Sequence record: ON529853.1
Length of the DNA: 64,000 nucleotides
Direction: 5' to 3' (one strand)
The position numbers were made by a program, and so were the translations under genes. Positions 2,023 through 55,380 of this stretch are shown here, one piece after another; the first letter of the stretch is position 1; each line of letters begins with the position of its first letter. The notes beneath the pieces were generated by a model. That model searched no databases. It was given only the letters and a program-made list of their open reading frames with translations, and was not told the DNA's origin.

Positions 2023-2880
2023 TCAGGCGACGCGCAGGCGCTCCACGAAGGGGGCTTCGAGGGCCATCAGTTCGTCGCGGCGCGCCCGCAGACGCTTGAA
2101 CTTGTCGCGATAGCCGTCCTGCTTGTCGTATTCCTTGGCGAGGCAGGCATGATAGAGGCGGTCGGCGAAATCGAACGACAGCTTGTCCAGGACGACTTGC
2201 AGGCTGTCCTCGGGGATGTCGAGCAGGAAGCGCACCGCACGCACCACCAGGCGGTGGTTCGGTTCCTGGATCAGGTCCAGATACTCGGACGGGGTGGAGA
2301 TGCCCGACAGGTTCAGCGCGGCCTCGATGTCAGCGCGTTCGCCGTTATACTTGGCGTAGTAGCAGAAGATGTGCGGATTGATCAGGCCCTGGTCCTTCAG
2401 GAAGGCGTCGATCTTGCGCTCGTGGGTGCCGGTGATGGTCACGTCGTCGACGAACAGCAGGACCTTATCCTGGATGAAGTCGCGGTTGATGAACAGCTTG
2501 TCAGCTTCCAGCAAGGCCTGACGCTGCTCCTTGGGCAGGAAGGAGTAGTCGGCGATGTAGGACATGGTCCGGTGCATCGTCGTGAACTCGACCATGCGGT
2601 GACCCTCACGGGTCAGCAGGTCGTTAAGCCGGTTCATGAAGTGCTCGGCCAGGATCGAGGCGGCGATCGGCACGACGTTGAACGCCGAAGGCACGACCAC
2701 GCAGCGGTCGGTGATCAGCATCCGCCGATGTTTGGCGTAGAAGGCGTCCGCCATGGCGTGGCCGAACTGGCGCGCCACGAGATCGGAACCGAACTTCAGG
2801 CGCGAGTAGTCCAGCGGGTTGAAGGATGCGGTGTCGAGGCACGAAAACTCGTGGACGACGAACTGGCCTTTGGCGCTCAA
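2023..2880 (-). CDS. Type I phosphoribosyltransferase, ComF-like/Ter-associated type
   Basis: PRPP-binding motif VLLFVDDVTITGTHE. N-terminal YSRLKFG segment resembles the Ter-associated PRTase family as I recall it. Confidence 0.75.
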   Translation of the reverse strand: MSAKGQFVVHEFSCLDTASFNPLDYSRLKFGSDLVARQFGHAMADAFYAKHRRMLITDRCVVVPSAFNVVPIAASILAEHFMNRLNDLLTREGHRMVEFTTMHRTMSYIADYSFLPKEQRQALLEADKLFINRDFIQDKVLLFVDDVTITGTHERKIDAFLKDQGLINPHIFCYYAKYNGERADIEAALNLSGISTPSEYLDLIQEPNHRLVVRAVRFLLDIPEDSLQVVLDKLSFDFADRLYHACLAKEYDKQDGYRDKFKRLRARRDELMALEAPFVERLRVA

Positions 2881-3539
2881 GCGATCAATCCTTTCAGCAG
2901 GGGCGCAAGGCCCTCGGGGTTGGGGGTGTGGGCGAAGCGGATGCCGTGGGCCTCACAACCGCCGTCGCAGATTTCGTTGTCGCCGACGTGAACGATTTCC
3001 GTCGGATAGATGTCGATCGCCGAGGCCTTGGTCTTGACGATGCGCCAGAACTCAGGGTGCGGCTTGGACACCGCGTGGACGTCCGAGAAGACCTTGAAGG
3101 CGAAGGGCACGTCCAGCCGGGCCAGGGCGGCCTCATACAGCACGCGGCCCCGGATGAAGTTGGTGTTGGAGCCGATCGACACCTGCACGCCGGCCGCATG
3201 GACCGCTTGCAGGGCTTCAACCACGTCGGGACGGATCAGGGGCGGATGGGCGCGGAAGGCCTCCTCCAGGCGACGCTGCAAGGCCCAAGGGATGATGTCC
3301 CCGGTCGGGTCGATCGCCAGGGCGAACTTCTTGTAGGTCGCTTCGCTGGTCAACCCCTCGCCGCGTTCCTCGGCGGCGCGATCAGCGCCGTCCTTGTGCT
3401 CGCGATAGACCGCCTTGATCTGAGCCAGATCGAGCGGGAGGTCGCGGAACACCGCGTCGCGGGCGGTCGAATAGGCGGGGTTGGCGCTGATGATCGTGTT
3501 CCACACGTCCAGCGAGATGAGGCGGGGGTTGGCCGTCAT
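2877..3539 (-). CDS. HAD-superfamily hydrolase
   Basis: Motif I ISLDVWNT, motif II GSNT, motif III K in SKPHPEF, motif IV HVGDNEICDG. Start re-picked at MTANPRL. Coupled to the PRTase by a TTGA overlap. Confidence 0.8.
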   Translation of the reverse strand: MTANPRLISLDVWNTIISANPAYSTARDAVFRDLPLDLAQIKAVYREHKDGADRAAEERGEGLTSEATYKKFALAIDPTGDIIPWALQRRLEEAFRAHPPLIRPDVVEALQAVHAAGVQVSIGSNTNFIRGRVLYEAALARLDVPFAFKVFSDVHAVSKPHPEFWRIVKTKASAIDIYPTEIVHVGDNEICDGGCEAHGIRFAHTPNPEGLAPLLKGLIA

Positions 3540-25776: not shown

Positions 25777-25803
25777 CTATCAAGTAGCATTGACGTCTGT
25801 CAA
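25774..25803 (-). promoter_or_regulatory. Promoter TTGACA-N18-TAGAGG
   Basis: Same TTGACAGAC and TAGAGG boxes as the 37356-37384 promoter. The predicted start site falls inside the hairpin. Confidence 0.55.
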
Positions 25804-33594: not shown

Positions 33595-36500
33595 ATGGCT
33601 CCTGTCCGCACGAAGCGCATCGCGCTCGTCTCTACGCGCATCCCCAACTACCCTCACCGCAAGAAGGACGGCGGCGGCTCTGGCGGCGGAATGTCCGGCC
33701 CCCAGGTCCATGACGTCGTCTTCGACGGCCCCGCCTCCATTACCGAGGGCGCCGCGCCCGGCACCGTGGTCGTCGGCGTGTCCACCCTGCCGCCGGAAGC
33801 GGAACTGACCCTGGTCAATGACGCCGGCGGGCGCTTCGCCCTCGATGGGAACGTCCTGGTCGCCGGCGCGACCCCGACTGATTATGAGGCCGCCACCCAG
33901 CACACCGTGGTCATCCGAGGCGCCCTGGGCGCCAGCACCCTGGACAAGCCCCTGGTGGTGTCGGTGGTGGACCTGGAGGAACTGATCGACTTCGATCTGA
34001 CCGGCCTGACGGTGCGCGAAGACGCCGCCCAGGGCGTGGTCGTCGGCGCCCTGTCCTCGAACCCGACCGGTGCGGCCTTCACCCTGACCGGCGACGCCGG
34101 CGGACGCTTCGCCTTGTCGGGCGCGAATATCGTGCGCGGCGCGACGGCGCTCGATTATGAAGCCGCCACCAGCCACGACATCACCATCAGCGCCGCCCTG
34201 GGCGGCGAGATCATCAACAAGACCTACACCATCCAGGTCACCGACCTCGACGAACTGACCAGCTTCACTCTGTCGGCCAGCACCATTGCGGAAAACTCGC
34301 CGGCCGGCACCGCTGTGGGCACGCTGTCGTCGGTCCCCGCCGGGGCCTCGTTCACCCTGGTTAACACCGCCGGAAACCGCTTCGCGTTGACGGGCGGGAC
34401 CCAGATTGTCGCGGGCGCGGTCGCCACCGACTATGAGGCCGCCACCAGCCACCAGGTCACGGTCCGCGCGACCCGCCTGGGCGAAACGATCGAGCAGCCC
34501 TTCACGATCACCGTCTCCAACGTCAATGAACTGACCAACATCACCCTGAGCGGGACGACGGTGGTGGAGAACACGGGGCCGGGCGTCACCGTCGGAACCC
34601 TGGCCTCGGTCCCCGCCGGCGCGTCTTTCGCGCTGACGAACACCGCCGGCAACCGCTTCGCCGTCTCGGGCGCCAACCTGGTGACGGGTGCGGTGAGCAC
34701 CAACTACGAAGCCGCAACCAGCCATAGCGTGACGGTCGAGGCGACGCGTGGCGCCGACGTCATCACCCGCACCTTCACCATCGACGTGACGGACGTCGTC
34801 GAGCCGCTGTCCATCGACCTCGCGCCCGCAACCATCGCCGAAAACTCGCCTCAGGGCACCCTGGTCGGCACTCTGACGTCGGAGCCCGCCGGCGCGACCT
34901 ATACGCTGTCGGACGCGGCGGGCAGTCGTTTCGCCCTGGCGGGCGACACCATCGTCGTCGGGACGGTCCTGACGGACTTCGAGACGGCCGCGAGCCATGC
35001 GATCACGGTGGATGCGGAACTGGACGGCGTGCAGACGTCGCGCACCTTCACCATCACCGTGGCGAATGTCGCCGAACTCACCGACATCACCCTGTCCAAC
35101 ACCACTGTGGCGGAAAACATCGCCAGCGGCGCCGTCGTGGGCGCCCTGACCTCGACGCCGGGCGGCGCGACCTGGACTCTCGTGGACGGCGCCAGCGGCC
35201 GCTTCTCCATCACGGGCAACAACGTCGTGCGCGGCGCGACCGCGCTCGACTATGAGGCGGCGACCTCGCACGCCATCACCGTACGTGGCACGCGCGGCGG
35301 GGAGACGCTGGAGAAGACCTTCACCATCACGGTCACCAATGTCGTTGAAATCAGCGACATCACGCTGTCGGCGAACACGACCCCGGAAAACTCCGTCGCC
35401 CCCGCCGTGGTGGGCGCGCTGTCGTCGACGCCGGCCGGCGCCAGCTTCGTGATGACGAACAACGCCGCCAACCGCTTCGCCCTGTCGGGGAACAACGTCG
35501 TGCGCGGCGCCACGGCGCTCGATTACGAGAACGCCACCTCGCACGACATCACCATCCGGGGGACCCGCCAAGGCGAGACCTTCGACAAGACGTTCACCAT
35601 CAACGTCACCAACGTCAACGAGATCACCGACATCACGCTGTCGCCGGCGACGGCGTCGGAAAGCATCGCCCAAGGCGCGGTCATCGGCGCCCTGGCGTCG
35701 GTCCCCGCCGGAGCGTCCTTCACCCTGACGGATACGGTCGGCGGCCGCTTCGCCATTTCGGGCTCCAACCTGGTGCGCGGAACGACGGCGCTCGACTATG
35801 AGGCCGCCACCTCGCACTCCGTCCAGGTCCAGGCGACCCTGGGTCCGGACACCTTCAACAAGACGCTGACGGTCACGGTGACCAATGTCGCCGAACTGAC
35901 GGCGATCAACCTGTCGGCGAGCACGATCGCCGAGAACTCCGTGGCGGGCACCGTCGTGGGCGGCCTGACGTCGACCCCGGCGGGCGCGACCTTCACGATG
36001 ACCGGCAACGCCGGCAATCGCTTCGCCCTGTCTGGCAACAACGTCGTCGCCGGATCGGTCTCGACCGATTACGAAGCCGCGACCAGTCACGAGGTGACGA
36101 TCCAGGGCGCGCGCGGCGGCGAAACCCTCAACCAGACCTTCACGATCAACGTGACCGACGTGGTGGAGACCGTGCCGCAGCCGGAAGTAAGCCGACCGGC
36201 CCAGACTGACATCATGATCACGCAGGAATACGCCTACTCGGGCTCGCCGGACGGCGACCTCGTCGGCGTCCTGCTGGCGATTCCGAAGACCAAGGCGGAA
36301 TATTCCGCCTATGTGTCGGGCGTGACCTATACCCTGCTCGACGACGCGGGCGGCCGCTTCAAGCTGGCGTCGGGGTCGTCCTATTCCCGCCAACTGCTGG
36401 CGGGTCCGACGGCGACCAACGACGCTGTCGCCGCTGAGCACACCATCACCGTGCGCGCTGAGTGGGGCGGCGGGGCCTATACGCGCGATCAGACCATCGT

Positions 36501-36801
36501 CATGACGGTCCGTCCCGCCGGTTCGATGCGCGGCGGCACCAATCAGGTGCTTGCGGCGGGCACCGCCAACCCCACGGCCACGGCGAACGGGTCGTCGGGT
36601 ACGGCGCCCTATACCCACGAGTGGACGATGGAAGCCTCCGAAAACTACGCGATCCAGGCCGGGGCCTCCACCGCCGTCGTCACGTTGGGCTATACCGGGA
36701 CGACCCCCGGCTTCGGTTGGGGCGTCACGCGGGCGGTCACCTACGACAGCGCCGGAAAGCACGCCTGGTCGCGCTTCCTGGTCATCTACTCGCCCAGCTA
36801 A
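33595..36801 (+). CDS. Cadherin-repeat protein (1068 aa; putative adhesin or virion appendage)
   Basis: Nine ~91-aa repeats carrying D(N)AGxRF and (T/L)DYEAATSHxITV...TxTIxVxxVxE, one degenerate tenth repeat, and a distinct C-terminal beta-rich domain. Confidence 0.88.
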   Translation: MAPVRTKRIALVSTRIPNYPHRKKDGGGSGGGMSGPQVHDVVFDGPASITEGAAPGTVVVGVSTLPPEAELTLVNDAGGRFALDGNVLVAGATPTDYEAATQHTVVIRGALGASTLDKPLVVSVVDLEELIDFDLTGLTVREDAAQGVVVGALSSNPTGAAFTLTGDAGGRFALSGANIVRGATALDYEAATSHDITISAALGGEIINKTYTIQVTDLDELTSFTLSASTIAENSPAGTAVGTLSSVPAGASFTLVNTAGNRFALTGGTQIVAGAVATDYEAATSHQVTVRATRLGETIEQPFTITVSNVNELTNITLSGTTVVENTGPGVTVGTLASVPAGASFALTNTAGNRFAVSGANLVTGAVSTNYEAATSHSVTVEATRGADVITRTFTIDVTDVVEPLSIDLAPATIAENSPQGTLVGTLTSEPAGATYTLSDAAGSRFALAGDTIVVGTVLTDFETAASHAITVDAELDGVQTSRTFTITVANVAELTDITLSNTTVAENIASGAVVGALTSTPGGATWTLVDGASGRFSITGNNVVRGATALDYEAATSHAITVRGTRGGETLEKTFTITVTNVVEISDITLSANTTPENSVAPAVVGALSSTPAGASFVMTNNAANRFALSGNNVVRGATALDYENATSHDITIRGTRQGETFDKTFTINVTNVNEITDITLSPATASESIAQGAVIGALASVPAGASFTLTDTVGGRFAISGSNLVRGTTALDYEAATSHSVQVQATLGPDTFNKTLTVTVTNVAELTAINLSASTIAENSVAGTVVGGLTSTPAGATFTMTGNAGNRFALSGNNVVAGSVSTDYEAATSHEVTIQGARGGETLNQTFTINVTDVVETVPQPEVSRPAQTDIMITQEYAYSGSPDGDLVGVLLAIPKTKAEYSAYVSGVTYTLLDDAGGRFKLASGSSYSRQLLAGPTATNDAVAAEHTITVRAEWGGGAYTRDQTIVMTVRPAGSMRGGTNQVLAAGTANPTATANGSSGTAPYTHEWTMEASENYAIQAGASTAVVTLGYTGTTPGFGWGVTRAVTYDSAGKHAWSRFLVIYSPS
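33700..36170 (+). repeat. Tandem ~273-bp coding repeats (cadherin-like domains)
   Basis: DYE-motif codons near 33877, 34153, 34429, 34702, 34975, 35248, 35521, 35794 and 36067. Confidence 0.85.
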
Positions 36802-36805
36802 CCAC

Positions 36806-36834
36806 AAAGGCCCGGAGCAATCCGGGCCTTTTTT
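36806..36834 (+). terminator. Intrinsic terminator, probably bidirectional
   Basis: AAAGGCCCGGA-GCAA-TCCGGGCCTTTTTT between convergent genes. Confidence 0.9.
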
Positions 36835-37355: not shown

Positions 37356-37384
37356 CCTCTAGGCGGGTCCATGCTGTCTGTCAA
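37356..37384 (-). promoter_or_regulatory. Leftward promoter TTGACA-N17-TAGAGG at the strand switch
   Basis: Followed by GACGAC and GGAGGAC. Confidence 0.7.
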
Positions 37385-38139: not shown

Positions 38140-38168
38140 AAAAACCACAGTCGCCTGGCTTTCGAGTG

Positions 38169-38197
38169 TTGACAGACAGCAAACACCCCTGCTACCA
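38169..38197 (+). promoter_or_regulatory. Promoter of the Ter operon, TTGACA-N17-CTACCA
   Basis: CGAGTGTTGACAGACAGC context. GACGAC and GGAGGACCCC downstream. Confidence 0.72.
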
Positions 38198-38236
38198 CCG
38201 CCATCGACGACACAGACCCCTACGGAGGACCCCTGA

Positions 38237-38515
38237 ATGACCAAGACCGCCGCCACCGTTACGCCGCTCGCCCTCGTGCCGACTGAGACCCCCGCCACGC
38301 TGACCCCCGCCGAACGCGCCCGCGCTTCCGCCGCTGTCGCCAAGGCTGACGCGCTCGCCGCGCTGGAAAGCCTCCAGACCAAGATCGAGGCCTGCATCAA
38401 CGAGGCCCGCGACCTGTCCACGGTGGATACGATCTCGGAGGCCATGCGCACCGAGATCAACAAGTTCGCCGGCAACAGCGCCGGGTCGCTCGACGCCATT
38501 TCGCGCGCCCGCTGA
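38237..38515 (+). CDS. Small helical protein, first gene of the Ter operon
   Basis: GGAGGACCCC RBS. Ala-rich and helical. Confidence 0.7.
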   Translation: MTKTAATVTPLALVPTETPATLTPAERARASAAVAKADALAALESLQTKIEACINEARDLSTVDTISEAMRTEINKFAGNSAGSLDAISRAR

Positions 38516-38552
38516 TCCTCTTACACGTCCAGGCTTGAAGGAGCCCCTCTCG

Positions 38553-39680
38553 ATGACTGCATCCAAAGGCTTCGACAAGCCTGTCGCCCAACCTGTGCCC
38601 CAGGCCGTCAGAGACGCCGCCGCTGCGTCGGGCTGGCAAACCGCCGACGCCGCTGCGCCTCGCGCCATGGGCCTCCATGTGGCGCAGGGCCAACCCCCCG
38701 CGACGCGTCCCGCCGGCGTCCCCTCGGGCCGCGCCCTGACCCCGTTCACCCTGCAAGAGGTGGTGGACTACGGCAAGCCTCAGGCGACCGGCGCCGCCAC
38801 GGTGGCGTCGAAGATCACCGGCTCGGCGCGGGCCGGCGACATCGACGAGGTCGGCAAGGCCCTGACGGCGCTGCTGACCGGCGCCCAGCAGTATGACCCG
38901 TCCAAGCTGGGCAAGGGCGGCTTCATGGGCTTCTTCAAGCGCAAGAAGCGCGAACTGGAATCCCACTACAAGTCGGTCGACGCCCAGGTGAACACCCTGG
39001 CGGCCGACGTCCAGAAACATATCGGGCATTTCCAGGGCCGAATTGGCGATCTGGAAGCCCTGAAGAAAGAGAACGCCACGCGCCACGCCGAACTCGGCGC
39101 GGCGATGGAGCGCGCCAACGAGCGTATCGCCTGGATGAAGGCCAATCCGCCCGAGGTCGACGCCTCGGACCCGATGTCGGCGGCCAATCTCCAGACCTGG
39201 AACAATGTCATCGCCTACGCCGAAAAGCGTGTGGACGACCTGCGCCGCGCCCAAGTCCTCTGCGAGATGCAGGCGCCCCAGATCGACATGATGCAGCAGA
39301 ACGCCGGCATGCTGGTGATGAAGTTCGGCGAGGTCCAGACCACGACCCTGCCGCAACTCCAGATGGGCTTCTCGCTCTACATCGCCAACATGGAGGCCCA
39401 GAAGGGCGCCGAGTTCTCCAAGGCGATCGACAACATGAACAACGACCTGATCACCCGGAACTCGGCCCAGTTGGGCACGACGACGGTGGCGGTGCGCCAG
39501 CAGATGGCGCGCTCGTCGGTCGACCTGACGACCCTTCAGACGGTCAAGGACAATCTGTTCAACACCATGGACGAGTGCAAGCGCATCCAGTCCGAACTCT
39601 CCACCCGCCTGCAAAACGAGCGCCCCGCTCTGGAGCAGGCCAGTCAGGACCTCGCCGCGCGACTCGCGTCCGGCGCCTGA
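38553..39680 (+). CDS. telA: TelA-family toxic anion resistance protein
   Basis: Long coiled coils, GFMGFF...YKSVDAQV, RVDDLRRAQVLCEMQAPQI.MMQ.N, TTTLP pattern. Ter context. Confidence 0.82.
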   Translation: MTASKGFDKPVAQPVPQAVRDAAAASGWQTADAAAPRAMGLHVAQGQPPATRPAGVPSGRALTPFTLQEVVDYGKPQATGAATVASKITGSARAGDIDEVGKALTALLTGAQQYDPSKLGKGGFMGFFKRKKRELESHYKSVDAQVNTLAADVQKHIGHFQGRIGDLEALKKENATRHAELGAAMERANERIAWMKANPPEVDASDPMSAANLQTWNNVIAYAEKRVDDLRRAQVLCEMQAPQIDMMQQNAGMLVMKFGEVQTTTLPQLQMGFSLYIANMEAQKGAEFSKAIDNMNNDLITRNSAQLGTTTVAVRQQMARSSVDLTTLQTVKDNLFNTMDECKRIQSELSTRLQNERPALEQASQDLAARLASGA

Positions 39681-39723
39681 GCCTTCGCCTCCCTTTCCCT
39701 CTACAGAACAAGGATAATCCCGC

Positions 39724-40488
39724 ATGGCCGTCATCGACCTGGAAAAGAAAGTCGAGAACGTCACGATCTCGCTGGCGAAAGCCGGCATCACCAAGGTGCC
39801 GCCGCTGCGTGTCGCCGCCGTCTATGACGACTCCTATTCGATGAAGCCGCTCTACGCGAACGGCGCCGTCCAGAAGGCCGCAGACCAGGTCCTGGCGGTC
39901 GGCATGAAGTTCGACGACGATGGTCAGGTGGACAGCTTCAAATTCCACAACGAAGCCTATTATGTCGGCACCCAGGACGAAAACCAGTTCGGCACCTTCG
40001 TCAAGGAAGCCATCCTGTCGCGCAACGACCTGTGGGGCGGCACCAGCTACGGCGCTGGTCTGAAGGCCGTCATGGACTTCTTCTTCGGCGCGGGCGTCCG
40101 CTCGACCGCCTTCGTCCCCGGCGCCAAGAAGAAGGGCCTGTTCGGCTTTGGCGGCCAGACCAGGGGCACCTATGAGACCAAGACCTTCAAGAGCGAAGGC
40201 ACGGACCCGGTCATGGTCATGTTCTTCACCGACGGCGAACAGACCGACGGCATGGCCGCCGCCCAGATCATCGCAGCGGCCGAGAAGGCCAACCAGCCGA
40301 TCTACTTCAACCTGATCGGCGTGGGCAACGCGACCAACTTCGCCTACCTGAAGAAGCTGGCCGACGACTACGACAACTGCGGGTTTGTCCACCTGAAGGG
40401 CTTCGACCTGACCGACAGCCAAATCTACGACGCCCTGCTGGGCACCGAAGAGGTCGTCGCCTTCCTGCGCAAGCACGGCGCCTCCTAA
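39724..40488 (+). CDS. Ter-associated vWA-domain protein
   Basis: MIDAS-type DDSYSM, GGTSY, FFTDGE. Confidence 0.85.
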   Translation: MAVIDLEKKVENVTISLAKAGITKVPPLRVAAVYDDSYSMKPLYANGAVQKAADQVLAVGMKFDDDGQVDSFKFHNEAYYVGTQDENQFGTFVKEAILSRNDLWGGTSYGAGLKAVMDFFFGAGVRSTAFVPGAKKKGLFGFGGQTRGTYETKTFKSEGTDPVMVMFFTDGEQTDGMAAAQIIAAAEKANQPIYFNLIGVGNATNFAYLKKLADDYDNCGFVHLKGFDLTDSQIYDALLGTEEVVAFLRKHGAS

Positions 40489-40504
40489 CCGCTCTCGATT
40501 TCCT

Positions 40505-40530
40505 GGCCCGGCGGCGGAGATCGCCGGGCC
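40505..40530 (+). other. Intercistronic GC hairpin (vWA/terC)
   Basis: GGCCCGGCG...CGCCGGGCC with no U-tract. Confidence 0.55.
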
Positions 40531-40560
40531 GCATCATCCACGACACAAGGACCACATCAT

Positions 40561-41556
40561 ATGGACATCGGGCTCGGCTACGTAGCCTTGGCGGTCATCG
40601 CCCTGGGGCTGCTCGCCTTTGATCTTTACAACCACCGCAAGCCCGAAGAGGTGTCGATCAAGAGCGCTGCTCTCTGGTCGGGCTTCTACGTCCTGGCGGC
40701 CCTGGGCTTCGCCCTCTACATCAACTTCCAGTATTCGACCGAGTGGGCGCAACTGTTCCTGACCGGCTACGCGCTGGAGAAGGTCCTGGCGGTGGACAAC
40801 CTGTTCGCCTTCATGATCATCTTCTCCTACTTCGGCATCGCGTCGAAGTTCCAGCACAACATCCTCTACTGGGGCATCCTGGGCGCCATCATCTTCCGGG
40901 GCGTGTTCGTGGTGCTGGGTACGTCCTTCACGGCCCTGTTCGGCCCCTGGGCGCTGCTGATCTTCGCAGCCATCATCGGCTACACCGCCATCAAGATGCT
41001 TCAGGGCGGCGGCGAGGACGGCGACGAGGCGGTCGACTACGCCGACAAGTGGTATATCAAGGGCGTCAAGCGCTTCCTGCCGGTCACCGAGAAGACCGAC
41101 GGCGGCAAGTTCTTCCTGAAGCTGCCGACCAACGCCGGCAAGACGGCCCTGTTCGCCACCCCGATGTTCCTCTGCCTGATCGCCATCGAAGTCACCGACG
41201 TCGTCTTCGCCTTCGACAGCGTCCCGGCCGTGATCGCGGTCACCAAGGAGCCGTTCCTGGTCTATTCGGCCATGATCTTCGCCATCCTCGGCCTGCGTTC
41301 GCTCTACTTCGTGCTGGAAGCGCTGCGTCGCGTCCTGTCGCGTCTGGAGACGGCGGTCATCTTCATCCTGCTCTTCATCGCCGGCAAGCTGACGGTGCAG
41401 GCGGGCTCCACCTTGGTGCATGACTTCACAGGCGCCATGCAGCCGATCCACATCGATCCGCTGCTCAGCCTCGCCATCGTCATGACCCTGCTGGTCGGCG
41501 GCGTGATCTGGTCGCTGGTCAGCCCCGTCAAGGAAGACGAAGCCGAAGCGGCCTAA
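40561..41556 (+). CDS. terC: TerC/Alx-family integral membrane protein
   Basis: LEKVLAVDNLFAF, YWGILGAIIFR, IEVTDVVFAFDSVPAV, ILGLRSLYF. Confidence 0.95.
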   Translation: MDIGLGYVALAVIALGLLAFDLYNHRKPEEVSIKSAALWSGFYVLAALGFALYINFQYSTEWAQLFLTGYALEKVLAVDNLFAFMIIFSYFGIASKFQHNILYWGILGAIIFRGVFVVLGTSFTALFGPWALLIFAAIIGYTAIKMLQGGGEDGDEAVDYADKWYIKGVKRFLPVTEKTDGGKFFLKLPTNAGKTALFATPMFLCLIAIEVTDVVFAFDSVPAVIAVTKEPFLVYSAMIFAILGLRSLYFVLEALRRVLSRLETAVIFILLFIAGKLTVQAGSTLVHDFTGAMQPIHIDPLLSLAIVMTLLVGGVIWSLVSPVKEDEAEAA

Positions 41557-41571
41557 GTCGACCTCCCCTAT

Positions 41572-41603
41572 AGGGTCGGCGGCGCGGGCGAACCGCCGAC
41601 CCT
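41572..41603 (+). other. Intercistronic GC hairpin (terC/terD)
   Basis: AGGGTCGGCGG...CCGCCGACCCT. Confidence 0.6.
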
Positions 41604-41631
41604 TATCCTCGCCCACCATAAAGGAAATCTC

Positions 41632-42279
41632 ATGAGCGTTATCGACCTCTCCAAAGGCGGCAACATCAACCTGGCGAAAGACGCCCCCGGCGTCACCCGC
41701 TTCGTCATTGGCCTGGGCTGGAACGCCAACCCGCAGAGCCCGCCGGACCTGGACGCCTCGGTCCTGCCCTGCACCAAGGTCGGCGGCAACCCGGTCCTGC
41801 CGGACGACAAGTCGTTCGTCTTCTACGGCAACCTGAAATCCTCGGACGGGGCCATCATCCACTCGGGTGACAACCTGACCGGCGACGGCGACGGCGACGA
41901 TGAGCGCATCGCCATCGATACCGCCAAGCTGAACCCGGCGATCGACGACATCCTGATCGTGGTGACGATCCACCAGGGCAAGGAACGCGGCCAGAACTTC
42001 GGCTTGGTCCGCAACGCCTACGCCCGCATCTACGACGCCGACAAGCTGGCGGCGGCCGAAGCGGCCAATCCGAACCTGTCGGACAAGGAACTGCACGACC
42101 TCGCCCTGGCGCAGTACGACCTTGAAGAAGACGCCGGCGGCTACACCGCCCTGGTCTTCGGCGAACTCTACTCGAAGGACGGCGACTGGCGCTTCAAGGC
42201 GCGCGGCGAAGGTCGTAACGAATCGCTGGGCGAACTGATCAGCAGCTACCTGCCGGCCGGCGTGTCGGTCTCGGGCTAA
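41632..42279 (+). CDS. terD: TerD-family protein
   Basis: LSKGGNINL, GLGW...DLDAS, VFYGNL, HSGDNLTGDGDGDDE, FGELY..DG.WRFKA.GEG. Confidence 0.95.
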   Translation: MSVIDLSKGGNINLAKDAPGVTRFVIGLGWNANPQSPPDLDASVLPCTKVGGNPVLPDDKSFVFYGNLKSSDGAIIHSGDNLTGDGDGDDERIAIDTAKLNPAIDDILIVVTIHQGKERGQNFGLVRNAYARIYDADKLAAAEAANPNLSDKELHDLALAQYDLEEDAGGYTALVFGELYSKDGDWRFKARGEGRNESLGELISSYLPAGVSVSG

Positions 42280-42293
42280 GCCTGACGACGAGG

Positions 42294-42320
42294 CCGGGGG
42301 ACGTTCGCGTCCCCCGGTTT
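42294..42320 (+). terminator. Hairpin with TTCG loop and a short T-run after terD
   Basis: CCGGGGGACG-TTCG-CGTCCCCCGG-TTT. Confidence 0.7.
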
Positions 42321-42331
42321 CGACTACCCTT

Positions 42332-43711
42332 ATGAGACGACCGGACCTTGCGTCCGAAGACCTGGAGGATGTTCCCGTGCCCAAGCCCGCCCCGCCCCCG
42401 ACTGATATGGAAGCGCTGGTGCGTCGGCCCAAGAAGGCACAATCGAACGTCCCCTCCCCGATCGACATGGAGGCGCTGGTGCGCCGCCCTCAGAAACCTA
42501 ATCCTCCTCCGGCCGCGCAACCGCCCGGCGACGTCGACATGGAAGCGCTGGTGCGTCGCCCGAAGAAGGCTCCCGCAGCGGTCGAGCCGGCCGAAGACCC
42601 CAGAATTCAAGTTTACATTCAAAACCGCGTCAACGGCTGGACGCCTGTCATGGCCGCCGGCGCCGCTGGATATAGCGGAAATCAGGTCCATGCCCTGGAG
42701 AGCGATCCTGACATCCAGGCGAGGATCGCCCAGCGCCTGGCGACGCTGCCGGGGTCGGTCCCCCAGAGCACGGGCAGCGGCTTCTACGGCAAGCCTGCCC
42801 CCGCGACCGACATGGAGGCCCTGGTGCGCCGGGCCAAGCCGAAGCCGACCTCGGGGTCCTTGACCGACTACACCCTTTACGCCATGGCGCGGAAGAACGG
42901 GGCGGACGACGGTTTCAAGGGGACGTTTGAAGACTATGTCGCCCAGCACGGCTCCGTGTCGAAGCCGGGGGCGGACATGAACGCCTTGGTGGCGCGCAAG
43001 AACACGCCGGCGCCCGCCCCCAACATGGAGGCCCTGGTCCGCCGCCCGCCGCCGCCCGCCGCGCCGGTGAACGCCAACGCCCGACGCAACCAGCAGGTCA
43101 ATGCGCTGATCGAGCGCGCGCGCCAGGTGGAGCCGAGCGTCGTTGAGGGCATGCGCTTCAACACCCGGCTTCACCGCTTCCTGGACCTGCGACCGACCGC
43201 CTGGACGACCTGGGGCGAAGACGAAGCCCGCGTCGTGGTGCAGTCCGCCTCGGGTCAGGCGGAGGCGTCTCGACAGCTTTCCCTCGCCAACGCCGTCAAG
43301 TGGGCCGCCGAATGCGAGCAGGCCTACGCCAAGCCGCCGGGGTTCATGGACCGCTTCTCCCAACAGACACGGCCTGAGTTCTATCGGGTCCGGCTGGAGC
43401 AGGCCCGCGACATGCTGATCAAGGTCCAGGACGACCTCCAGCAGGTGCAGGACCTGGTGCGCGAGAACCTGGACCGGCTGCGGATCGACGTGGTCGTGCT
43501 TCAGGTCGCCACCGAACAGGTCACCGACGCCTCGGACTCCATCATCGCCACGCGGCGTCTCCAGACCCTGGTCCAGGTGCAGGCGACCGCCGCCATGATC
43601 CTCCAGGGCTGCGAGAGTCTAGCCCAGACCGCCGCCGCCCAGGCGGCCACGGTATCGTCGTTGCTGACGGTGACGATCCCCAACTGGATCATCGCGCAGC
43701 AGGATCGTTGA
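42332..43711 (+). CDS. Pro-rich protein with six (D/N)M(E/N)ALV(R/A)R repeats and a helical C-terminal domain
   Basis: Repeats visible in both protein and DNA. Last gene of the Ter cluster. Confidence 0.8.
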   Translation: MRRPDLASEDLEDVPVPKPAPPPTDMEALVRRPKKAQSNVPSPIDMEALVRRPQKPNPPPAAQPPGDVDMEALVRRPKKAPAAVEPAEDPRIQVYIQNRVNGWTPVMAAGAAGYSGNQVHALESDPDIQARIAQRLATLPGSVPQSTGSGFYGKPAPATDMEALVRRAKPKPTSGSLTDYTLYAMARKNGADDGFKGTFEDYVAQHGSVSKPGADMNALVARKNTPAPAPNMEALVRRPPPPAAPVNANARRNQQVNALIERARQVEPSVVEGMRFNTRLHRFLDLRPTAWTTWGEDEARVVVQSASGQAEASRQLSLANAVKWAAECEQAYAKPPGFMDRFSQQTRPEFYRVRLEQARDMLIKVQDDLQQVQDLVRENLDRLRIDVVVLQVATEQVTDASDSIIATRRLQTLVQVQATAAMILQGCESLAQTAAAQAATVSSLLTVTIPNWIIAQQDR

Positions 43712-43730: not shown

Positions 43731-43760
43731 TTGACGACTGCTGTCAGAACTGGTTAGTAG
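43731..43760 (+). promoter_or_regulatory. rtcB promoter TTGACG-N17/18-(T)TAGTAG with CTGTCAG in the spacer
   Basis: Intergenic, upstream of the GAGGAG RBS. Confidence 0.6.
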
Positions 43761-43789: not shown

Positions 43790-45028
43790 ATGCAAGAGAT
43801 TAAGGGTTGGCATGGCGGCAAGATCAAGGCCTTCACCCAGCACCCCGACGGCCGCGAGGTCGCGTTCGAACATGCGGCCCAGGTGCAGGCGTTCAACGCC
43901 GCCGCGCTGCCGTTCATCCATGAGCATGTCGCCATCATGCCGGACGTGCATGCCGGGTATGGCTCCACCGTCGGTTCGGTGATCCCGACCAAGGGCGCCA
44001 TCATCCCGGCGGCGGTCGGCGTCGACATCGGCTGCGGCATGATGGCGGTGCGCACCACCCTGACCGGCGACGACCTGCCCGACAGCCTGGAAAAGCTGCG
44101 CTCGCTGATCGAGCACGCCGTTCCGCACGGCGGACCGGGCAAGCACGGTTCCTGGCTGGAGCCGGGGCGCTACGGCATCCCCAACGCGATCATGAACGCC
44201 TGGGTCAAGACGGGCATGGAAGCGCGCTTCAAGGCCCTGTGCGACAAGCACCCGATCATCGAGAAGTCCTTCCACGTCGTCCAACTGGGCTCGCTCGGCG
44301 GCGGCAACCACTTCATCGAAGTGTGCCTGGACAAGGACAACCGCGTCTGGGTCATGCTCCACTCGGGCTCTCGCGGCGTCGGCAACGTGATCGGCCGCTA
44401 CTTCACCGAGAAGGCGAAGGAGGCGCTGAACAAGCGCGGCGGTTACATCCCGCAGGACAAGGACCTGGCCTGGTTCGAAGAGGGTGAACAACTCTTCGAC
44501 GACTATGTCGAGGCGGTCGGCTGGGGGCAGGACTTCGCGCGCCTGAACCGCGAGATGATGATGGTCAACGTCCTGCGCGTCATGCGCACGGTGTTGCCGC
44601 CCTTCAAGACGGACAAGGAGGCGGTCAACTGCCACCACAACTACGTCACGAAGGAGCATCACTTCGGGGCGGACGTCTTCGTGACCCGCAAGGGCGCGGT
44701 GTCGGCCAAGGACGGCGAACTGGGCATCATTCCCGGCTCCATGGGCGCGCGGTCCTACATCGTGCGCGGCAAGGGCAACCCGGATTCGTTCTGCTCGTGT
44801 TCGCACGGGGCGGGACGGACCATGAGCCGCACCAAGGCCAAGGCCGAGTTCACGGTCGAGGACATGGTCAAGGCCACCGAAGGCGTCGAGTGCCGCAAGG
44901 ACGCCGGCGTGATTGATGAAATTCCGATGGCTTACAAGGACATCGACACCGTCATCGACATCCAGGTCGCCTCCGGGCAGATCGAGGTCGTGGCGATCCT
45001 GAAACAAGTCTTGTGCGTGAAGGGCTAA
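43790..45028 (+). CDS. rtcB: RtcB RNA 3'-phosphate ligase
   Basis: MPDVHAG.G..VG, GVDIGCG, LGSLGGGNHFIE, LHSGSRG, CHHNY, HGAGR, DEIPMAYKDI. Confidence 0.97.
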   Translation: MQEIKGWHGGKIKAFTQHPDGREVAFEHAAQVQAFNAAALPFIHEHVAIMPDVHAGYGSTVGSVIPTKGAIIPAAVGVDIGCGMMAVRTTLTGDDLPDSLEKLRSLIEHAVPHGGPGKHGSWLEPGRYGIPNAIMNAWVKTGMEARFKALCDKHPIIEKSFHVVQLGSLGGGNHFIEVCLDKDNRVWVMLHSGSRGVGNVIGRYFTEKAKEALNKRGGYIPQDKDLAWFEEGEQLFDDYVEAVGWGQDFARLNREMMMVNVLRVMRTVLPPFKTDKEAVNCHHNYVTKEHHFGADVFVTRKGAVSAKDGELGIIPGSMGARSYIVRGKGNPDSFCSCSHGAGRTMSRTKAKAEFTVEDMVKATEGVECRKDAGVIDEIPMAYKDIDTVIDIQVASGQIEVVAILKQVLCVKG

Positions 45029-47219: not shown

Positions 47220-47777
47220 ATGGCGAAAGACATCTGGTTCGCTTCGGACCACCACTTCGGGCACGAAAAGTGCTGCACCACCTTCCTGCGCGAGGACGGC
47301 ACGCCGCTGCGTCCGTTCTCGGGCGCCGAGGAGATGAACGCGGCGCTGATCGAGCGCCACAACGAGGTCGTCAAGCCGCAGGACAAGGTCTACTTCCTGG
47401 GCGACGTCGCCATCACCCAGAAGAACCTGCCCCTGGTGGGGCAGATGCACGGCTCCAAGCGCTTGATCCGGGGCAACCATGACATCTTCCCGACCAAGAA
47501 GTACCTGGAGTTCTTCAAGGAGGTCTACGGCGTCCGCGTCCTGACCGAGTTCGGGGGCATCGTCCTGACGCACGTCCCGATCCATGCCAGCCAGTTGCGC
47601 CGCTTCAAGGTCAACATCCACGGCCACCTGCACGACAAGGTGCTGGAGGAGCCCGGCTACATCAACGTCTCGGTCGAACAGATCGACTACCGCCCGATCC
47701 ACATCGACGAAATCCTGGCCCAGGCCAGCCGCTTCAACCCCGGATACGACTTCACTCAAGACGTCCACCCCGGATAA
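47220..47777 (+). CDS. Calcineurin-like metallophosphoesterase
   Basis: SDHHFGH, LGD, GNHD, THVP, IHGHLH. Confidence 0.9.
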   Translation: MAKDIWFASDHHFGHEKCCTTFLREDGTPLRPFSGAEEMNAALIERHNEVVKPQDKVYFLGDVAITQKNLPLVGQMHGSKRLIRGNHDIFPTKKYLEFFKEVYGVRVLTEFGGIVLTHVPIHASQLRRFKVNIHGHLHDKVLEEPGYINVSVEQIDYRPIHIDEILAQASRFNPGYDFTQDVHPG

Positions 47778-47784
47778 GGACCTC

Positions 47785-48335
47785 ATGCTCACCGCCCTTT
47801 ACATCCTCGTCGGCTACTTCTTCGCCGCCGGGTTCATCATCGCGCCGTTCGTGTTCCGCGAACAACTGGCCTCCACCCGCTGGGCCGCCTACAGCATCAT
47901 CAACGCCAACTTCTTCTGGACGATGCTGCCGGTGGCGGTGGCGGTCTGGGCGCTGTGGCTGCCGCTGCTGGCGTTCGCCATCTTCGCCGGCACCTGGGTC
48001 GGCATCTTCAGCCAGATCAAGACGCGCATCCGTATCCGGACGAACGCGGAAGTCGCGGCGGACCGGTCGGTTCTGGACGTCGACTTCATGGCCCCGACGC
48101 CGGGCGACCCGAACATCGGGCGGGACGGCCGCGCATGACGGACGAGGCCCCTGAGGTCGATCTGACCGAGATCGTCGGCATGACGCCGGCCCTGGCCGCG
48201 CTGAAGACCCGGATGACCATTCGCGAACTCTACCGCAACGGCGCCAAGCAGGTGATCGCCCACGATCACGACGCCAACCGGATCAACGTCACCACCGACG
48301 CCGGTTACATCACCCACGTTTCTGGAATCGGCTAA
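47785..48335 (+). CDS. Membrane protein 47785..48138 and small protein 48135..48335
   Basis: Hydrophobic segments. AAGGA RBS. Confidence 0.6.
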
Positions 48336-49174
48336 TGGCGGACCCTATCCCCTTCTGCGGCGACAACGCCCGCCTGAACCCGGCCAAAGGCGACGAAGGT
48401 CGGGTGCGCGTCATGCACGCCCACAAGACCGACGACGGCCGGGTGATCTCCTGCTGGAAGCTGACGCCGGAGGAGATCGTCAAGGTCGCCGAAACCGGAG
48501 AGGTCTGGCTGTCGCTGTCCTGCGGCGATAACATCCCGCCGTCCTTTGTCTCGGGCACGCCTCTGATGCAGGCCTTCGATCAGGACACCGGCCATGCGAT
48601 CAGCAGCTACCGCTCTGATGGCGAGCACGAGGTGCAGGACGCGCGGCGGTTCGCGCTTTTGCACCACGGCGACCAGAAGTACGGCAAGCGCCCCTACGCC
48701 TACCACCTGGACGGGGTGGCGGCCGTCCTTCGTCGGTGGGGCGCTGACTCCACCTACCTCAAGGCGGGCTACGGTCACGACCTTGAAGAGGATACGATGC
48801 AGGACCTGCCCCTGGTCGAGCGCCGCGCCACGGTGCGCGTGCGGTTAGGCGAGGAGGCCGAGGCCTACGTCTGGGCCTGCACCGGCACCCAGGCGACCCG
48901 CGAAGCCTGTCTGGAGGAGCAGATCGCCAAGATCACCGCTCGTCCCGGCGCCGCGCCGGTCAAGTGCGCGGACCGCCTGTTCAACATGGCGTCCTGCCTG
49001 GAAGAGGTCCAGGAGACGCCCACCGACCATCTGCTGAAGCTGTCGCGCACCTACGACGGCGAAGCGGATCGCTTCATCTCGGCGATGGAACCCCTGGTTC
49101 CCGCCCAGATCATTGAGGAACTGCGTGACGTCGCTGGTCGACTGCGCGCCTTCCTCGCCACTCAGGCTAACTAA
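48335..49174 (+). CDS. Two-domain protein: small N-terminal domain plus RelA/SpoT (Mesh1/SAH)-type HD hydrolase
   Basis: ARRFA..HHGDQKYG..PY..HL..V, GHDLEEDT, VKCADRLFN. Confidence 0.75.
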   Translation: MADPIPFCGDNARLNPAKGDEGRVRVMHAHKTDDGRVISCWKLTPEEIVKVAETGEVWLSLSCGDNIPPSFVSGTPLMQAFDQDTGHAISSYRSDGEHEVQDARRFALLHHGDQKYGKRPYAYHLDGVAAVLRRWGADSTYLKAGYGHDLEEDTMQDLPLVERRATVRVRLGEEAEAYVWACTGTQATREACLEEQIAKITARPGAAPVKCADRLFNMASCLEEVQETPTDHLLKLSRTYDGEADRFISAMEPLVPAQIIEELRDVAGRLRAFLATQAN

Positions 49175-53475: not shown

Positions 53476-54864
53476 ATGCCTTTCGTTTTGATCGGAGGCG
53501 CCGTCTTTGGCGTCATTCTGGTGCTCGCCCTGCTGGTCGCGCTTATGCTGCGCCGCGTCGTTCCCACCAACATGGTCCACATCGTTCAGCGCGGTAAGAC
53601 GACCATCTCCTACGGCAAGGGCAAGGAAGCCGGCAACGTCTACTACGAGTGGCCCCAGTCGGTGCCGGCGCTCGGCGTGACCGTGACCCGCTTCCCCGAG
53701 AGCGTCTTCGACGTCAGCCTGGCGAACTACGAAGCCTACGACATCGGCCGCCTGCCGTTCGTGGTCGACATCGTCGCCTTCTACCGCGTCGAGAACTCCG
53801 AGACCGCCGCCCAGCGCGTCGCCTCGTTCGATGAACTTCAGCAGCAACTTAAGTCGGTCCTCCAGGGCGCGGTGCGCACCATCCTGTCGACCAACAAGCT
53901 GGAAGAGATCATGCAGGACCGGGCCAAGCTGGGCACCGAGTTCACCGCCGAGGTCAACCATCAGCTTCAGGAATGGGGCGTGACCACCGTCAAGTCCATC
54001 GAGTTCATGGACATCCGCGACAGCAGCGGCTCGAAGGTCATCGCCAACATGATGGCGAAGGAACAGTCGCGCATCGAGAAGGAAAGCCGCATCACCGTCG
54101 CGGAAAACCTGCGCGAAGCTGAACTGAAGGAAATCGACGCCGACCGCGTCGTCGAGGTCCAGAAGCAGGACGCCCAACAACAACTCGGCATCCGCACCGC
54201 CGAGAAGGAACGCGCCGTTGGCATCGCCGATGAGCAGACGCGTCAGGAAGTCCTGCTGGAAAGCAAGCTGACCGCCGAGCGCCAGATGGACGTCCAGAAG
54301 ATCAACGACGTGAAGACGGCCGAGATCGCCAAGGACGTCGCGATCGTCAAGGCCGAGCAGGACCGCGAAGTCCTGGTGGTCAAGTCGGAAGCCGAGAAGC
54401 GCCAGACCGTCATCGCGGCCGAGGCGCAGAAGGAGCGCACCGAAGTCGTCGCCCAGGGCGATCTCGCGGCGGCCCAGAACCAGGCCCAGGGCCTGCAAGC
54501 CATCGGCGAGGCCAAGGCCAAGGCGGAAGAAGCCATCCTGATGGCGCCGGTCACCGCCCAGATCACCCTCGCCAAGGAGATCGGCGAGAACCAGCCCTAC
54601 CAGCAGTATCTGATCACGGTCGAGCAGATCAAGGCGGGCCAGGCGGTCGGCACCGAGATGGCCCAGGCCCTGAAGAGCGCCGACCTCAAGGTCATCGCCA
54701 ACGCGGGCGACGTCCAGTCGGGCGTGGCGTCGCTGGGCGGCATCCTGTCCCCGGCGGGCGGCACCGCCATCGCCGGCGCCCTGTCGGCGCTGTCGCAACT
54801 GCCCGAGGGTAAGGCCCTGGTGGAGCGTCTCACCGGCGTCGACAAGGCGGCGAGCGCCGGTTGA
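53476..54864 (+). CDS. SPFH/band-7 flotillin-like membrane protein
   Basis: N-terminal TM, SPFH domain (LQGAVRTIL...LEEIMQDR...WGV....EFMDI) and long AE/EA-rich coiled coil. Confidence 0.9.
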   Translation: MPFVLIGGAVFGVILVLALLVALMLRRVVPTNMVHIVQRGKTTISYGKGKEAGNVYYEWPQSVPALGVTVTRFPESVFDVSLANYEAYDIGRLPFVVDIVAFYRVENSETAAQRVASFDELQQQLKSVLQGAVRTILSTNKLEEIMQDRAKLGTEFTAEVNHQLQEWGVTTVKSIEFMDIRDSSGSKVIANMMAKEQSRIEKESRITVAENLREAELKEIDADRVVEVQKQDAQQQLGIRTAEKERAVGIADEQTRQEVLLESKLTAERQMDVQKINDVKTAEIAKDVAIVKAEQDREVLVVKSEAEKRQTVIAAEAQKERTEVVAQGDLAAAQNQAQGLQAIGEAKAKAEEAILMAPVTAQITLAKEIGENQPYQQYLITVEQIKAGQAVGTEMAQALKSADLKVIANAGDVQSGVASLGGILSPAGGTAIAGALSALSQLPEGKALVERLTGVDKAASAG

Positions 54865-54966: not shown

Positions 54967-55380
54967 ATGACATTCGTTGCTGACCCCCTGGAACCGGCGA
55001 TCTCCACCACACACGCTGGTGGAACGCTGCGCGAGACCCTGCCGACGGTCTTTCGGTTGACCTGGCTGGACCATGCGTATCACGACGCGCCCGAAGGTGC
55101 GGAGATCGCCTCCTATCACAGGGCGCGCGACTTCAAACACCTGGGCGGCGCGATCGCCTGGGCGCGGCGACGGATTTTCCATGGGGAGGCGTTCGGCGAC
55201 GTCATCGAACTGGTTCGTGTGGACCGACGCCGCATCAACGGCGTCTACGCCGAGGAGCCTTACGAGGCGCGCGACATCACCCTGGCGGGGTTCCTGCCCT
55301 GGGAACAGACAAGAAACTGGAGCGGAAGCCACACCGAGGTGGTCCTTTCGCATCCCCACAAGAGGTGTATCTGGGAATGA
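54967..55380 (+). CDS. Hypothetical protein leading the NAD operon
   Basis: ATGA-coupled to the NMNAT gene. Confidence 0.65.
   Translation: MTFVADPLEPAISTTHAGGTLRETLPTVFRLTWLDHAYHDAPEGAEIASYHRARDFKHLGGAIAWARRRIFHGEAFGDVIELVRVDRRRINGVYAEEPYEARDITLAGFLPWEQTRNWSGSHTEVVLSHPHKRCIWE

Follow-up and report, generated by a model that had tools for sequence, protein, structure and literature searches.

A Ter-type gene module in large Caulobacter and Brevundimonas phages

The DNA analyzed here is a stretch of 64,000 nucleotides of sequence record ON529853.1 (hereafter the window, whose positions are those of the record minus 124,000), and this work deals with a group of six genes located at positions 38169–43711. 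This region is 100% identical to Brevundimonas phage vB_BpoS-Bambus, a member of the Dolichocephalovirinae of sewage origin with a genome of 348,100 bp and B. pondensis LVF1 as its host. The six genes form a Ter module whose core consists of TelA, a TerF-type vWA protein, a TerC/Alx protein, TerD and, at the end of the array, a protein (g6) whose C-terminal domain is recognized by remote homology and fold as a paralog of TelA, truncated in the manner of KlaA. In some lineages, a small first gene (g1) is added to this core.

The window has a G+C content of 65% and contains many spurious open reading frames (ORFs); nonetheless, the six plus-strand frames of the Ter module are real. The ratios of nonsynonymous to synonymous substitution rates (dN/dS), computed against phage Kabachok, are 0.14 for TelA, 0.13 for the vWA protein, 0.09 for TerC and 0.06 for TerD; g1 gives 0.46, while the tail and the C-terminal domain of g6 give 0.35 and 0.04, respectively. 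All six genes are coding sequences under purifying selection, and the initial annotation was right in placing six co-oriented genes here. In GenBank, the Bambus genes are named TelA-like, TerC and TerD, the other three (vWA, g1, and g6) being entered as hypothetical. The features described in this work are collected in Table 1.

Table 1. Position and supporting evidence of the features of the Ter module and of the HAD/PRTase_3 gene pair in the window.
Feature	Position	Strand	Evidence and remarks
Promoter-like box GTGTTGACAGAC ... GCTACCAC, host sigma-70/73 type, putative	38166..38198	+	Recurrence and conservation
g1, small helical protein, 92 aa, lineage-restricted accessory	38237..38515	+	GGAGGA ribosome-binding site
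TelA, 375 aa, full-length toxic-anion-resistance family	38553..39680	+	PF05816 E 1.3e-48, model positions 14-331 of 332; phrog_5890
vWA protein, TerF-C-terminal type	39724..40488	+	PF10138 vWA-TerF-like E 6.9e-28; PF00092 E 2e-5
TerC/Alx-subfamily integral membrane protein	40561..41556	+	PF03741 E 1.4e-42; TIGR03718 E 1.2e-95
TerD, single domain	41632..42279	+	PF02342 E 6.6e-56
Terminator/attenuator-like hairpin between terD and g6	42289..42322	+	15-bp G+C-rich stem, TTT behind
g6, whole gene, 444 aa	42377..43711	+	GTG start
g6 N-terminal tail, residues 1-239, low-complexity, Pro/Ala-rich	42377..43093	+	Five DMEALVRR copies and one degenerate copy
g6 C-terminal domain, 205 aa, truncated TelA-like (KlaA-like) helical bundle	43094..43711	+	hhalign, AlphaFold2, AlphaFold database, ESM Atlas
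PRTase_3, ComF-like phosphoribosyltransferase	2023..2880	-	PF15610 E 1.7e-46; GenBank "hypothetical"
HAD-family hydrolase, partner of the phosphoribosyltransferase	2877..3539	-	PF00702 E 6.3e-12 on long ORF 2877-3791; GenBank "hypothetical", coding sequence 2877-3539

The Ter-type identities proposed earlier for the four central genes are confirmed by Pfam matches and by intact motifs. TelA starts with an ATG at 38553, preceded by an AGGAG ribosome-binding site. The metal-ion-dependent adhesion site (MIDAS) of the vWA protein is intact (DDSYS...GGT...TDG, i.e., the DxSxS, T and D residues). TerC matches the NCBI model TIGR03718 (TerC/Alx) over its full length, with 320 bits against a cut-off of 246, and carries both acidic membrane motifs, LEKVLAVDN and EVTDVVFAFDSVPA. 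TerD, present in Bambus as a single paralog, displays an intact Ca-binding motif (GDNLTGDGDGDDE), the form used for comparison being GDN(R/L)TG(E/A)GDGDDE of the K. pneumoniae TerD structure. The definitions of the MIDAS and of the TerC acidic motifs are likewise those established for the families and not tool output. The locus therefore holds the components by which membership in the Ter hub is recognized, namely a TerD with its Ca motif, TerC, TelA and a TerF/TerY-type vWA protein with MIDAS (Anantharaman, Iyer and Aravind, 2012). A search of the entire 348-kb genome for TerB gave no PF05099 match at E ≤ 1; since TerB is not universal in Ter clusters, its absence points to an abbreviated Ter variant.

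The order of the genes is common to all large Caulobacter and Brevundimonas phage records (22/22) and recurs in three metagenomic contigs (L005, L011, and L019); the annotated order also matches in CcrColossus (gp223–gp218), CcrSC (gp251c–gp246c) and Kikimora. Across the region, identity to Bambus amounts to 99.9% for Marchewka and to 91–93% for Kabachok, Domovoi, and Papperlapapp, while Kikimora and Gurke are 81% identical across the central genes. More generally, TerD is found in 146 phage records belonging to many phage groups. The smaller phiCbK-type phages gave no match in searches with TerD or g6 and apparently lack the module. Ter genes go unmentioned in the source paper on the Brevundimonas phages (PMC10070969), and the phiCbK paper is silent on them too. 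In one of the contigs (L019:809-1962), TelA and the vWA protein are called as short fragments (103, 100, 96, and 40 aa), which frameshifts, decay or an assembly error could explain; TerC, TerD and the g6-family gene are intact there.

The two flanking genes had been regarded as non-standard Ter members, and possibly phage-specific. As to g1, this view stands: it has no Pfam, PHROG or NCBIfam match, and nothing above 0.58 was retrieved with it from the ESM Atlas. A word-based search, tblastn and a scan of related contigs with hidden Markov models (HMMs) returned close or positional homologs only, the positional orthologs being those of Kikimora (36% identity) and Colossus (30%); the gene is missing in CcrSC and in the metagenomic contigs examined. 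Fast-evolving and restricted to the Bambus, Kikimora and Colossus lineages, g1 is best described as a lineage-specific accessory. We also considered g1 as the lost C-terminal third of a split TelA, and rejected this candidate (hhalign probability 0.4%). For g6, on the contrary, the same view could not be maintained, as described below.

The sixth gene and its family

The true start of g6 is the GTG at 42377, which lies 8 nt downstream of a GGAGGA sequence and at the same point at which its homologs begin. Direct sequence searches found no match for the protein in Pfam, NCBIfam, PADLOC or the PDB, and the TelA model PF05816 matches neither g6 nor any of 18 relatives at E ≤ 10, so that the protein stays outside the TelA family as Pfam delimits it. 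Nevertheless, four lines of evidence (profile-profile comparison, the match with KlaA, the ESM Atlas and AlphaFold2) indicate that its C-terminal domain is a divergent, truncated TelA. First, a g6 profile built from 106 sequences aligns with a profile of 34 phage TelA sequences over 175 columns (hhalign probability 90%, E 1.7e-6), the C-terminal domain corresponding to TelA residues 60–274 of 375; with shallow profiles, an earlier comparison had reached a probability of just 1.2%. Second, the g6 family profile aligns equally with RK2-type KlaA, a short TelA paralog covering model positions 40–247 of 332 (probability 90%, E 1.6e-6), and this alignment takes in the PGF/PTWF and the C-terminal (V/T)(I/V)PxW motifs. 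In a targeted search the g6 HMM matches KlaA at E 1.6e-5, and KlaA scores above both KlaB and phage TelA. Third, by the language-model features of the ESM Atlas the domain falls with TelA clusters (0.91; 83 of 100 matches), and by structure it resembles a TelA cluster with a template-modelling (TM) score of 0.76 over 195 residues. Finally, AlphaFold2 predicts an all-helical domain with high scores (pLDDT 94.2, pTM 0.85); among the best 18 matches of this model in the SwissProt part of the AlphaFold database, 16 are TelA-like proteins (Staphylococcus, YaaN, Listeria) or KlaA; their probabilities are 0.97–1.0, and TMq reaches 0.63 among the TelA-like proteins and is 0.36 for KlaA.

Other structural comparisons were less telling. 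No solved TelA structure is available for comparison; Foldseek retrieved nothing from the PDB at E < 1e-3, and VIA-align returned only generic helical bundles (Z ≤ 12.3), in a range that the tool itself flags as unspecific. A likeness of g6 to ClyA, PspA or CorA was dropped, as its VIA-align scores fall within this unspecific range for helical bundles. The predicted complex of TelA with the g6 C-terminal domain received a score of 0.01 ("no answer"), which weighs neither way. Overall, by remote homology and predicted fold, the C-terminal domain of g6 is a divergent and truncated TelA paralog of KlaA-like type, although it is not TelA by the Pfam threshold. Hence the description of g6 as a novel repeat protein holds for its repeats, which are treated below, and not for its fold, which is TelA-like.

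In a set of 1.84 billion proteins, the g6 family has 102 representatives at the level of 50% identity; as far as isolated phages are concerned, it is confined to the 22 records of large Caulobacter and Brevundimonas phages. We sampled 12 representatives for their genomic contexts, some of them very distant (E about 1e-4); 11 of the contexts are readable, the remaining contig (L018) ending too early. TerD lies directly upstream of the g6-family gene in 9 of these 11 contexts (L005, L006, L007/L008, L010, L011/L012, L019, L020, and the isolates), and TelA does so in the other two (L009 and L013), whose stretches of 16 and 8.9 kb, respectively, contain no gene for TerC, TerD or a vWA protein. Across phages, g6 is the part of the module most tightly tied to Ter genes.

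Pattern scans of one genome per species in 185,579 prokaryote species detected no g6-family gene and no phage-type TelA, and a pattern scan of IMG/VR was equally empty; as such scans need near-exact peptide patterns, these absences are weak evidence. The absence from cellular genomes bears on one of the roles suggested by the initial annotation, i.e., that the phage proteins mimic a host Ter defence and jam it. Phage copies of host defence parts can serve as decoys, and bacterial Ter systems have been linked to phage inhibition (Iyer, Anantharaman, Krishnan, Burroughs and Aravind, 2021, Viruses 13:63; PMC7824862). However, the scans of cellular genomes argue that the phage proteins are not close copies of host proteins, no TerD match was obtained for Caulobacter vibrioides, a host of sister phages with the module that was among the control genomes, and the catalytic and binding motifs of the module are all intact, although degenerate ones would be expected in a decoy. 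A counter-defence role, the weakest of those initially put forward, is thus very improbable.

The N-terminal tail of g6 contains the octapeptide DMEALVRR, which is identical in four copies; a fifth copy reads NMEALVRR, a sixth is degenerate, and the spacing is irregular. The corresponding DNA copies, at 42404, 42464, 42536, 42809, and 43022, differ synonymously, which we read as selection on the peptide and not as recent duplication. The only tandem DNA repeat in the gene is a CCG-rich run, so the repeats are dispersed peptide motifs, and none occurs outside g6 in the 348-kb genome. The tail evolves faster than the C-terminal domain, and both its length and its number of motifs vary among relatives: close relatives have 3–5 copies of DMEALVRR, and distant ones 1–5 copies of (E)P(K/R)GLx(F/L). 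In a wastewater contig (run X2), 36 letters of other sequence connect position 42561 to 42808; we consider it a natural relative whose g6 tail is shorter, in keeping with this variation in repeat number.

Of the 34 phage TelA proteins examined, about 20 also carry the motif (E)P(K/R)GLx(F/L), at residues 3–9. In the slightly relaxed form (P/K)(K/R)GLx(F/L), it is found both in the TelA N-terminus and in the g6 tail in 5 of 11 lineages, with L005 as a less clear sixth, and in neither protein in the other 5; the two lineages having only TelA and g6 are without it. This pattern suggests that TelA and g6 could both be tethered to one common partner through their tail motifs.

Expression signals and genes accompanying the module

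Upstream of g1, the box at 38166 consists of GTGTTGACAGAC and, at a distance of about 16 nt, GCTACCAC. Sites matching the 12-mer GTGTTGACAGAC with at most 2 mismatches occur 13 times in the window against 3.6 expected, and are mostly intergenic; an exact copy lies at 37376 on the minus strand, and, besides the site at 38166 (+), others are found, for instance, at 25795 (-), 31289 (-), and 54926 (+). A looser pattern of the Caulobacter type, TTGAC-N15-19-GCTANNNC, accounts for 4 sites in the window, where 0.24 would be expected. In addition, both Kabachok and Kikimora have the 12-mer unchanged, the latter in an otherwise diverged intergenic region. Judging from this recurrence and conservation, the GTGTTGACAGAC box probably represents a class of phage promoters used by the host RNA polymerase. 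A similar TTGACG box is present at 43731, upstream of rtcB, and upstream of the module a gene for a 1068-aa cadherin-domain protein (33595-36801, +) has a strong terminator behind it (36806-36831); the rtcB box and this terminator make the boundaries originally drawn for the operon reasonable.

The six genes had been placed behind one promoter. The conserved box is in favor of this view, but a single uniform transcript is not certain because of the hairpin located between terD and g6. This structure has a predicted energy of -30.9 kcal/mol (z -4.16, with none of 200 shuffled sequences as good) and is identical in Kabachok; Kikimora has another stem sequence forming the same structure in the same place, plus TTTT. 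No promoter-like box follows the hairpin, and g6 would, we infer, be read through at a reduced level. Perfect G+C-rich hairpins of 9 and 11 bp without T-tracts are also found on the plus strand between the vWA gene and terC (40505-40530) and between terC and terD (41572-41603), respectively, and could be elements for RNA processing or stability. A Mn riboswitch is typical of alx/terC genes; an Rfam scan upstream of TerC and across the region gave no match, the Mn riboswitch included.

Expression graded by the hairpin, together with the multivalent tail of g6, is suggestive of a structure built in fixed proportions. The module might therefore control late events of the phage itself, such as the timing of lysis or a membrane site for replication or assembly. 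Every part of it is membrane-proximal, and the TelA-like fold resembles the membrane-active bundles ClyA and PspA (Z about 10). These matches, however, lie in the range flagged above as unspecific for such bundles, boxes similar to the host-type promoter box are scattered over non-structural regions, and the smaller phiCbK-type relatives apparently manage without the module. We therefore consider a role in late events quite improbable.

Two further genes, predicted to be associated with Ter systems and encoding a HAD-family hydrolase and, just downstream of it, a PRTase_3 phosphoribosyltransferase, are found in the same window, 35 kb from the Ter hub. In contig L007 the order HAD, PRTase_3, TerD and g6-family gene is seen, all adjoining. 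The pair is present in 157 phage records, among them those of all seven Brevundimonas jumbo phages, Colossus, PW, phAPEC8-like coliphages, FBKp34, and Rhizobium phages, and TerD is encoded in many of these records as well. Phosphoribosyltransferases and HAD enzymes of these types have been assigned by Aravind's group to the synthesis of a nucleoside-like Ter ligand (PMC7824862). Although unlinked, the pair makes the Ter system of Bambus less abbreviated than published.

As for the neighborhood of the module, rtcB (RNA ligase; 43790-45028, +) follows it directly, and is likewise located behind the g6-family gene in Kikimora, Colossus, and L018. Together with a calcineurin-like phosphoesterase (47220-47777, +) and an HD_4/DUF6817 protein (48335-49174, +), it likely constitutes an RNA-repair set. 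Farther downstream lie a 462-aa membrane-scaffold type protein of the SPFH/Band 7 family (53476-54864, +; PF01145 E 5.8e-19) and a two-gene set for NAD+ salvage, composed of a fusion of a NadM-type nicotinamide mononucleotide (NMN) adenylyltransferase with Nudix (55365-56489) and of NAMPT (56523-57950), both on the plus strand. The salvage pair also comes after Ter or TelA genes in L005, L009, L013, and CcrSC, and may counter NAD-depleting host defences.

Relation to known systems and possible role of the module

Abbreviated Ter operons listing TerD, TerC, TerF, and TelA have been described in group 3 Caulobacter jumbo phages, with a proposed use against superinfecting phages or in xenobiotic resistance (PMC7824862). 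The module studied here is the same, and the gene order of CcrColossus and CcrSC is identical to that of Bambus. The metal-dependent membrane complex for exclusion or envelope stabilisation put forward by the initial annotation is accordingly a hypothesis already published for these phages, and the presence of a Ter operon in this group, with its interpretation, is largely not new. Unlike our analysis, the relevant passages of that paper make no mention, for these phages, of the sixth gene, the small first gene or the HAD/PRTase pair; here the sixth gene appears as a KlaA-like TelA paralog with motif tails, and HAD and PRTase_3 are found elsewhere in the genome. What is new, therefore, is the reclassification of g6, its family-wide linkage to Ter genes, the repeated and shared tail motifs, the conserved hairpin between terD and g6 and the unlinked HAD and PRTase pair.

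The closest parallel for the two TelA-type proteins is the kilA operon of the IncP-alpha plasmids RK2/RP4, with its genes KlaA, KlaB (TelA) and KlaC (TelB), in which a short TelA paralog likewise accompanies a full-length TelA. KlaA and KlaB are recognized homologs and, with KlaC, cause FiwB fertility inhibition of IncW plasmids (PMC5696584). The two systems differ in several respects. In Bambus the order of the paralogs is reversed and the vWA protein, TerC and TerD, which the RK2 operon does not have, lie between them; KlaA is without the long repeat tail, and its identity to g6 is only about 20%.

The terZABCDEF operons of IncHI2 plasmids and E. coli O157 islands share with the phage module the TerC and TerD families and a vWA protein like the C-terminus of TerF, but the phage is without TerB, has one TerD paralog and adds TelA and a TelA paralog. 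Phage inhibition and colicin resistance are among the phenotypes of terZABCDEF. In B. subtilis, the yceCDEFGH genes for TerD paralogs, TerC (YceF), and TelA (YceH) form one stress-induced operon of the sigma-W regulon, which, unlike the Bambus module, has three TerD copies and is not known to include a TerF-type vWA protein or a KlaA-like short paralog.

Among other phages, Rhizobium phage RHph_TM2_3B displays the order TelA-vWA-TerC-TerD as in Bambus, with the difference that a 210-aa hydrophobic membrane protein (L021:8642-9274), and not a g6-family gene, comes after terD; this protein could be a functional substitute for g6, perhaps TelB/KlaC-like. In Acinetobacter phage ME3, the vWA, TerC and TerD genes lie beside phosphoribosyltransferases and HAD, and a similar Ter cluster is described for Klebsiella phage phiKp34/FBKp34. 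None of these three phages has a g6-family gene.

The reading that we tentatively prefer, while giving it somewhat less than an even chance, is that proteins of the module assemble under the inner membrane in a cation-dependent way and thereby block incoming DNA. The host RNA polymerase would transcribe the module during infection, TerC would be placed in the inner membrane, and TerD, the vWA protein and the two TelA-type proteins would assemble below it in a manner dependent on divalent cations. The long flexible tail of g6, with its 5–6 motif copies, could act as a multivalent tether clustering a partner, for which the vWA protein and TerD are the most plausible candidates, and the hairpin between terD and g6 would reduce the level of the KlaA-like protein compared with the other members. 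Such an assembly might alter the envelope of the infected cell and lead to poor entry of foreign DNA, be it from superinfecting phages or from conjugating plasmids; HAD and PRTase_3 may be the source of the nucleoside-like ligand that has been proposed for Ter systems. We are led to the exclusion of foreign DNA by the analogy with the bacterial ter operons and with RK2 KlaABC, and by the proposal already published (PMC7824862).

Several observations weigh against this assembly and its effect on incoming DNA. The exclusion phenotypes of the bacterial ter operons and FiwB belong to distant relatives, phage TelA being about 25% identical to KlaB, and none of the six proteins matches a PADLOC defence model. 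The concordance between the motifs of TelA and g6 is a lead and not a result, since the lineages are related and the regular expression was set after seeing the data; furthermore, CcrSC has a complete module, yet no recognisable tail motif. Public RNA-labelled runs containing sequence of the region are flagged as probably DNA and yield short contigs. Finally, as these phages are virulent and have long infections, a homeostatic role fits equally well.

According to this last view, TerC would export or deliver Mn2+ or another divalent cation, while TerD, the vWA protein and the TelA proteins would buffer Ca2+ and stabilise the inner membrane, with no exclusion being involved; the cell making the 348-kb genome and very large prolate virions would thus be kept energised over a long latent period. 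The high score of TerC in the Alx/TerC subfamily of metal homeostasis and the intact Ca-binding and MIDAS motifs are consistent with it, as is the company of host-maintenance genes for NAD salvage (NadM-Nudix and NAMPT), RtcB, and the SPFH/Band 7 protein. In Firmicutes, TelA homologs are reportedly tied to envelope stress tolerance, as in the case of Listeria TelA and nisin and of the sigma-W dependent yceC-H genes of B. subtilis. Conversely, two lineages (L009 and L013) keep the TelA pair without a transporter or a Ca-binding protein nearby, and the phenotype of the plasmid KlaAB pair concerns DNA transfer and not metal (PMC5696584). On the whole, cation and envelope homeostasis has to be taken seriously as an alternative, although we consider it less probable than the exclusion of foreign DNA and, by itself, rather unlikely.

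The family names, for their part, evoke tellurite, and resistance of the host to this or other xenobiotics, here during pseudolysogeny, is the additional possibility raised by Iyer et al. (PMC7824862). Nevertheless, the source paper describes the Brevundimonas phages as plaque-forming sewage isolates (PMC10070969), tellurite is ecologically rare, and nothing in the locus is specific for oxyanions, so that we give this explanation very little credit.

Returning to the assembly that would block incoming DNA, a more detailed version can be conceived, which we regard as clearly unlikely to be correct as a whole. The tail motifs of both TelA-type proteins (DMEALVRR in the Bambus type, EP(K/R)GLxF in most relatives) would be interchangeable and bind one receptor, either the MIDAS face of the vWA protein or TerD. 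The outcome would be a multivalent lattice, dependent on Ca or Mn, that blocks superinfecting DNA as a counterpart of KlaABC, and that is switched on by the ligand made by HAD and PRTase_3.

Studies of tellurite resistance, phage inhibition, colicin resistance, and plasmid fertility inhibition have made the Ter, TelA, and KlaA systems familiar since the 1980s–90s. The phages offer compact and strongly conserved versions of them, down to a five-gene hub and, within the stretches read from some relatives, to the TelA and KlaA-like pair alone. The annotation of the vWA, g6, HAD and PRTase genes is hereby corrected in 22 phage genomes. A second TelA-type subunit and the matching tail motifs lend themselves to specific experiments on binding and stoichiometry and, if the lattice were real, it would provide the first mechanistic model of any Ter system, in the form of a phage minimal set of five proteins.

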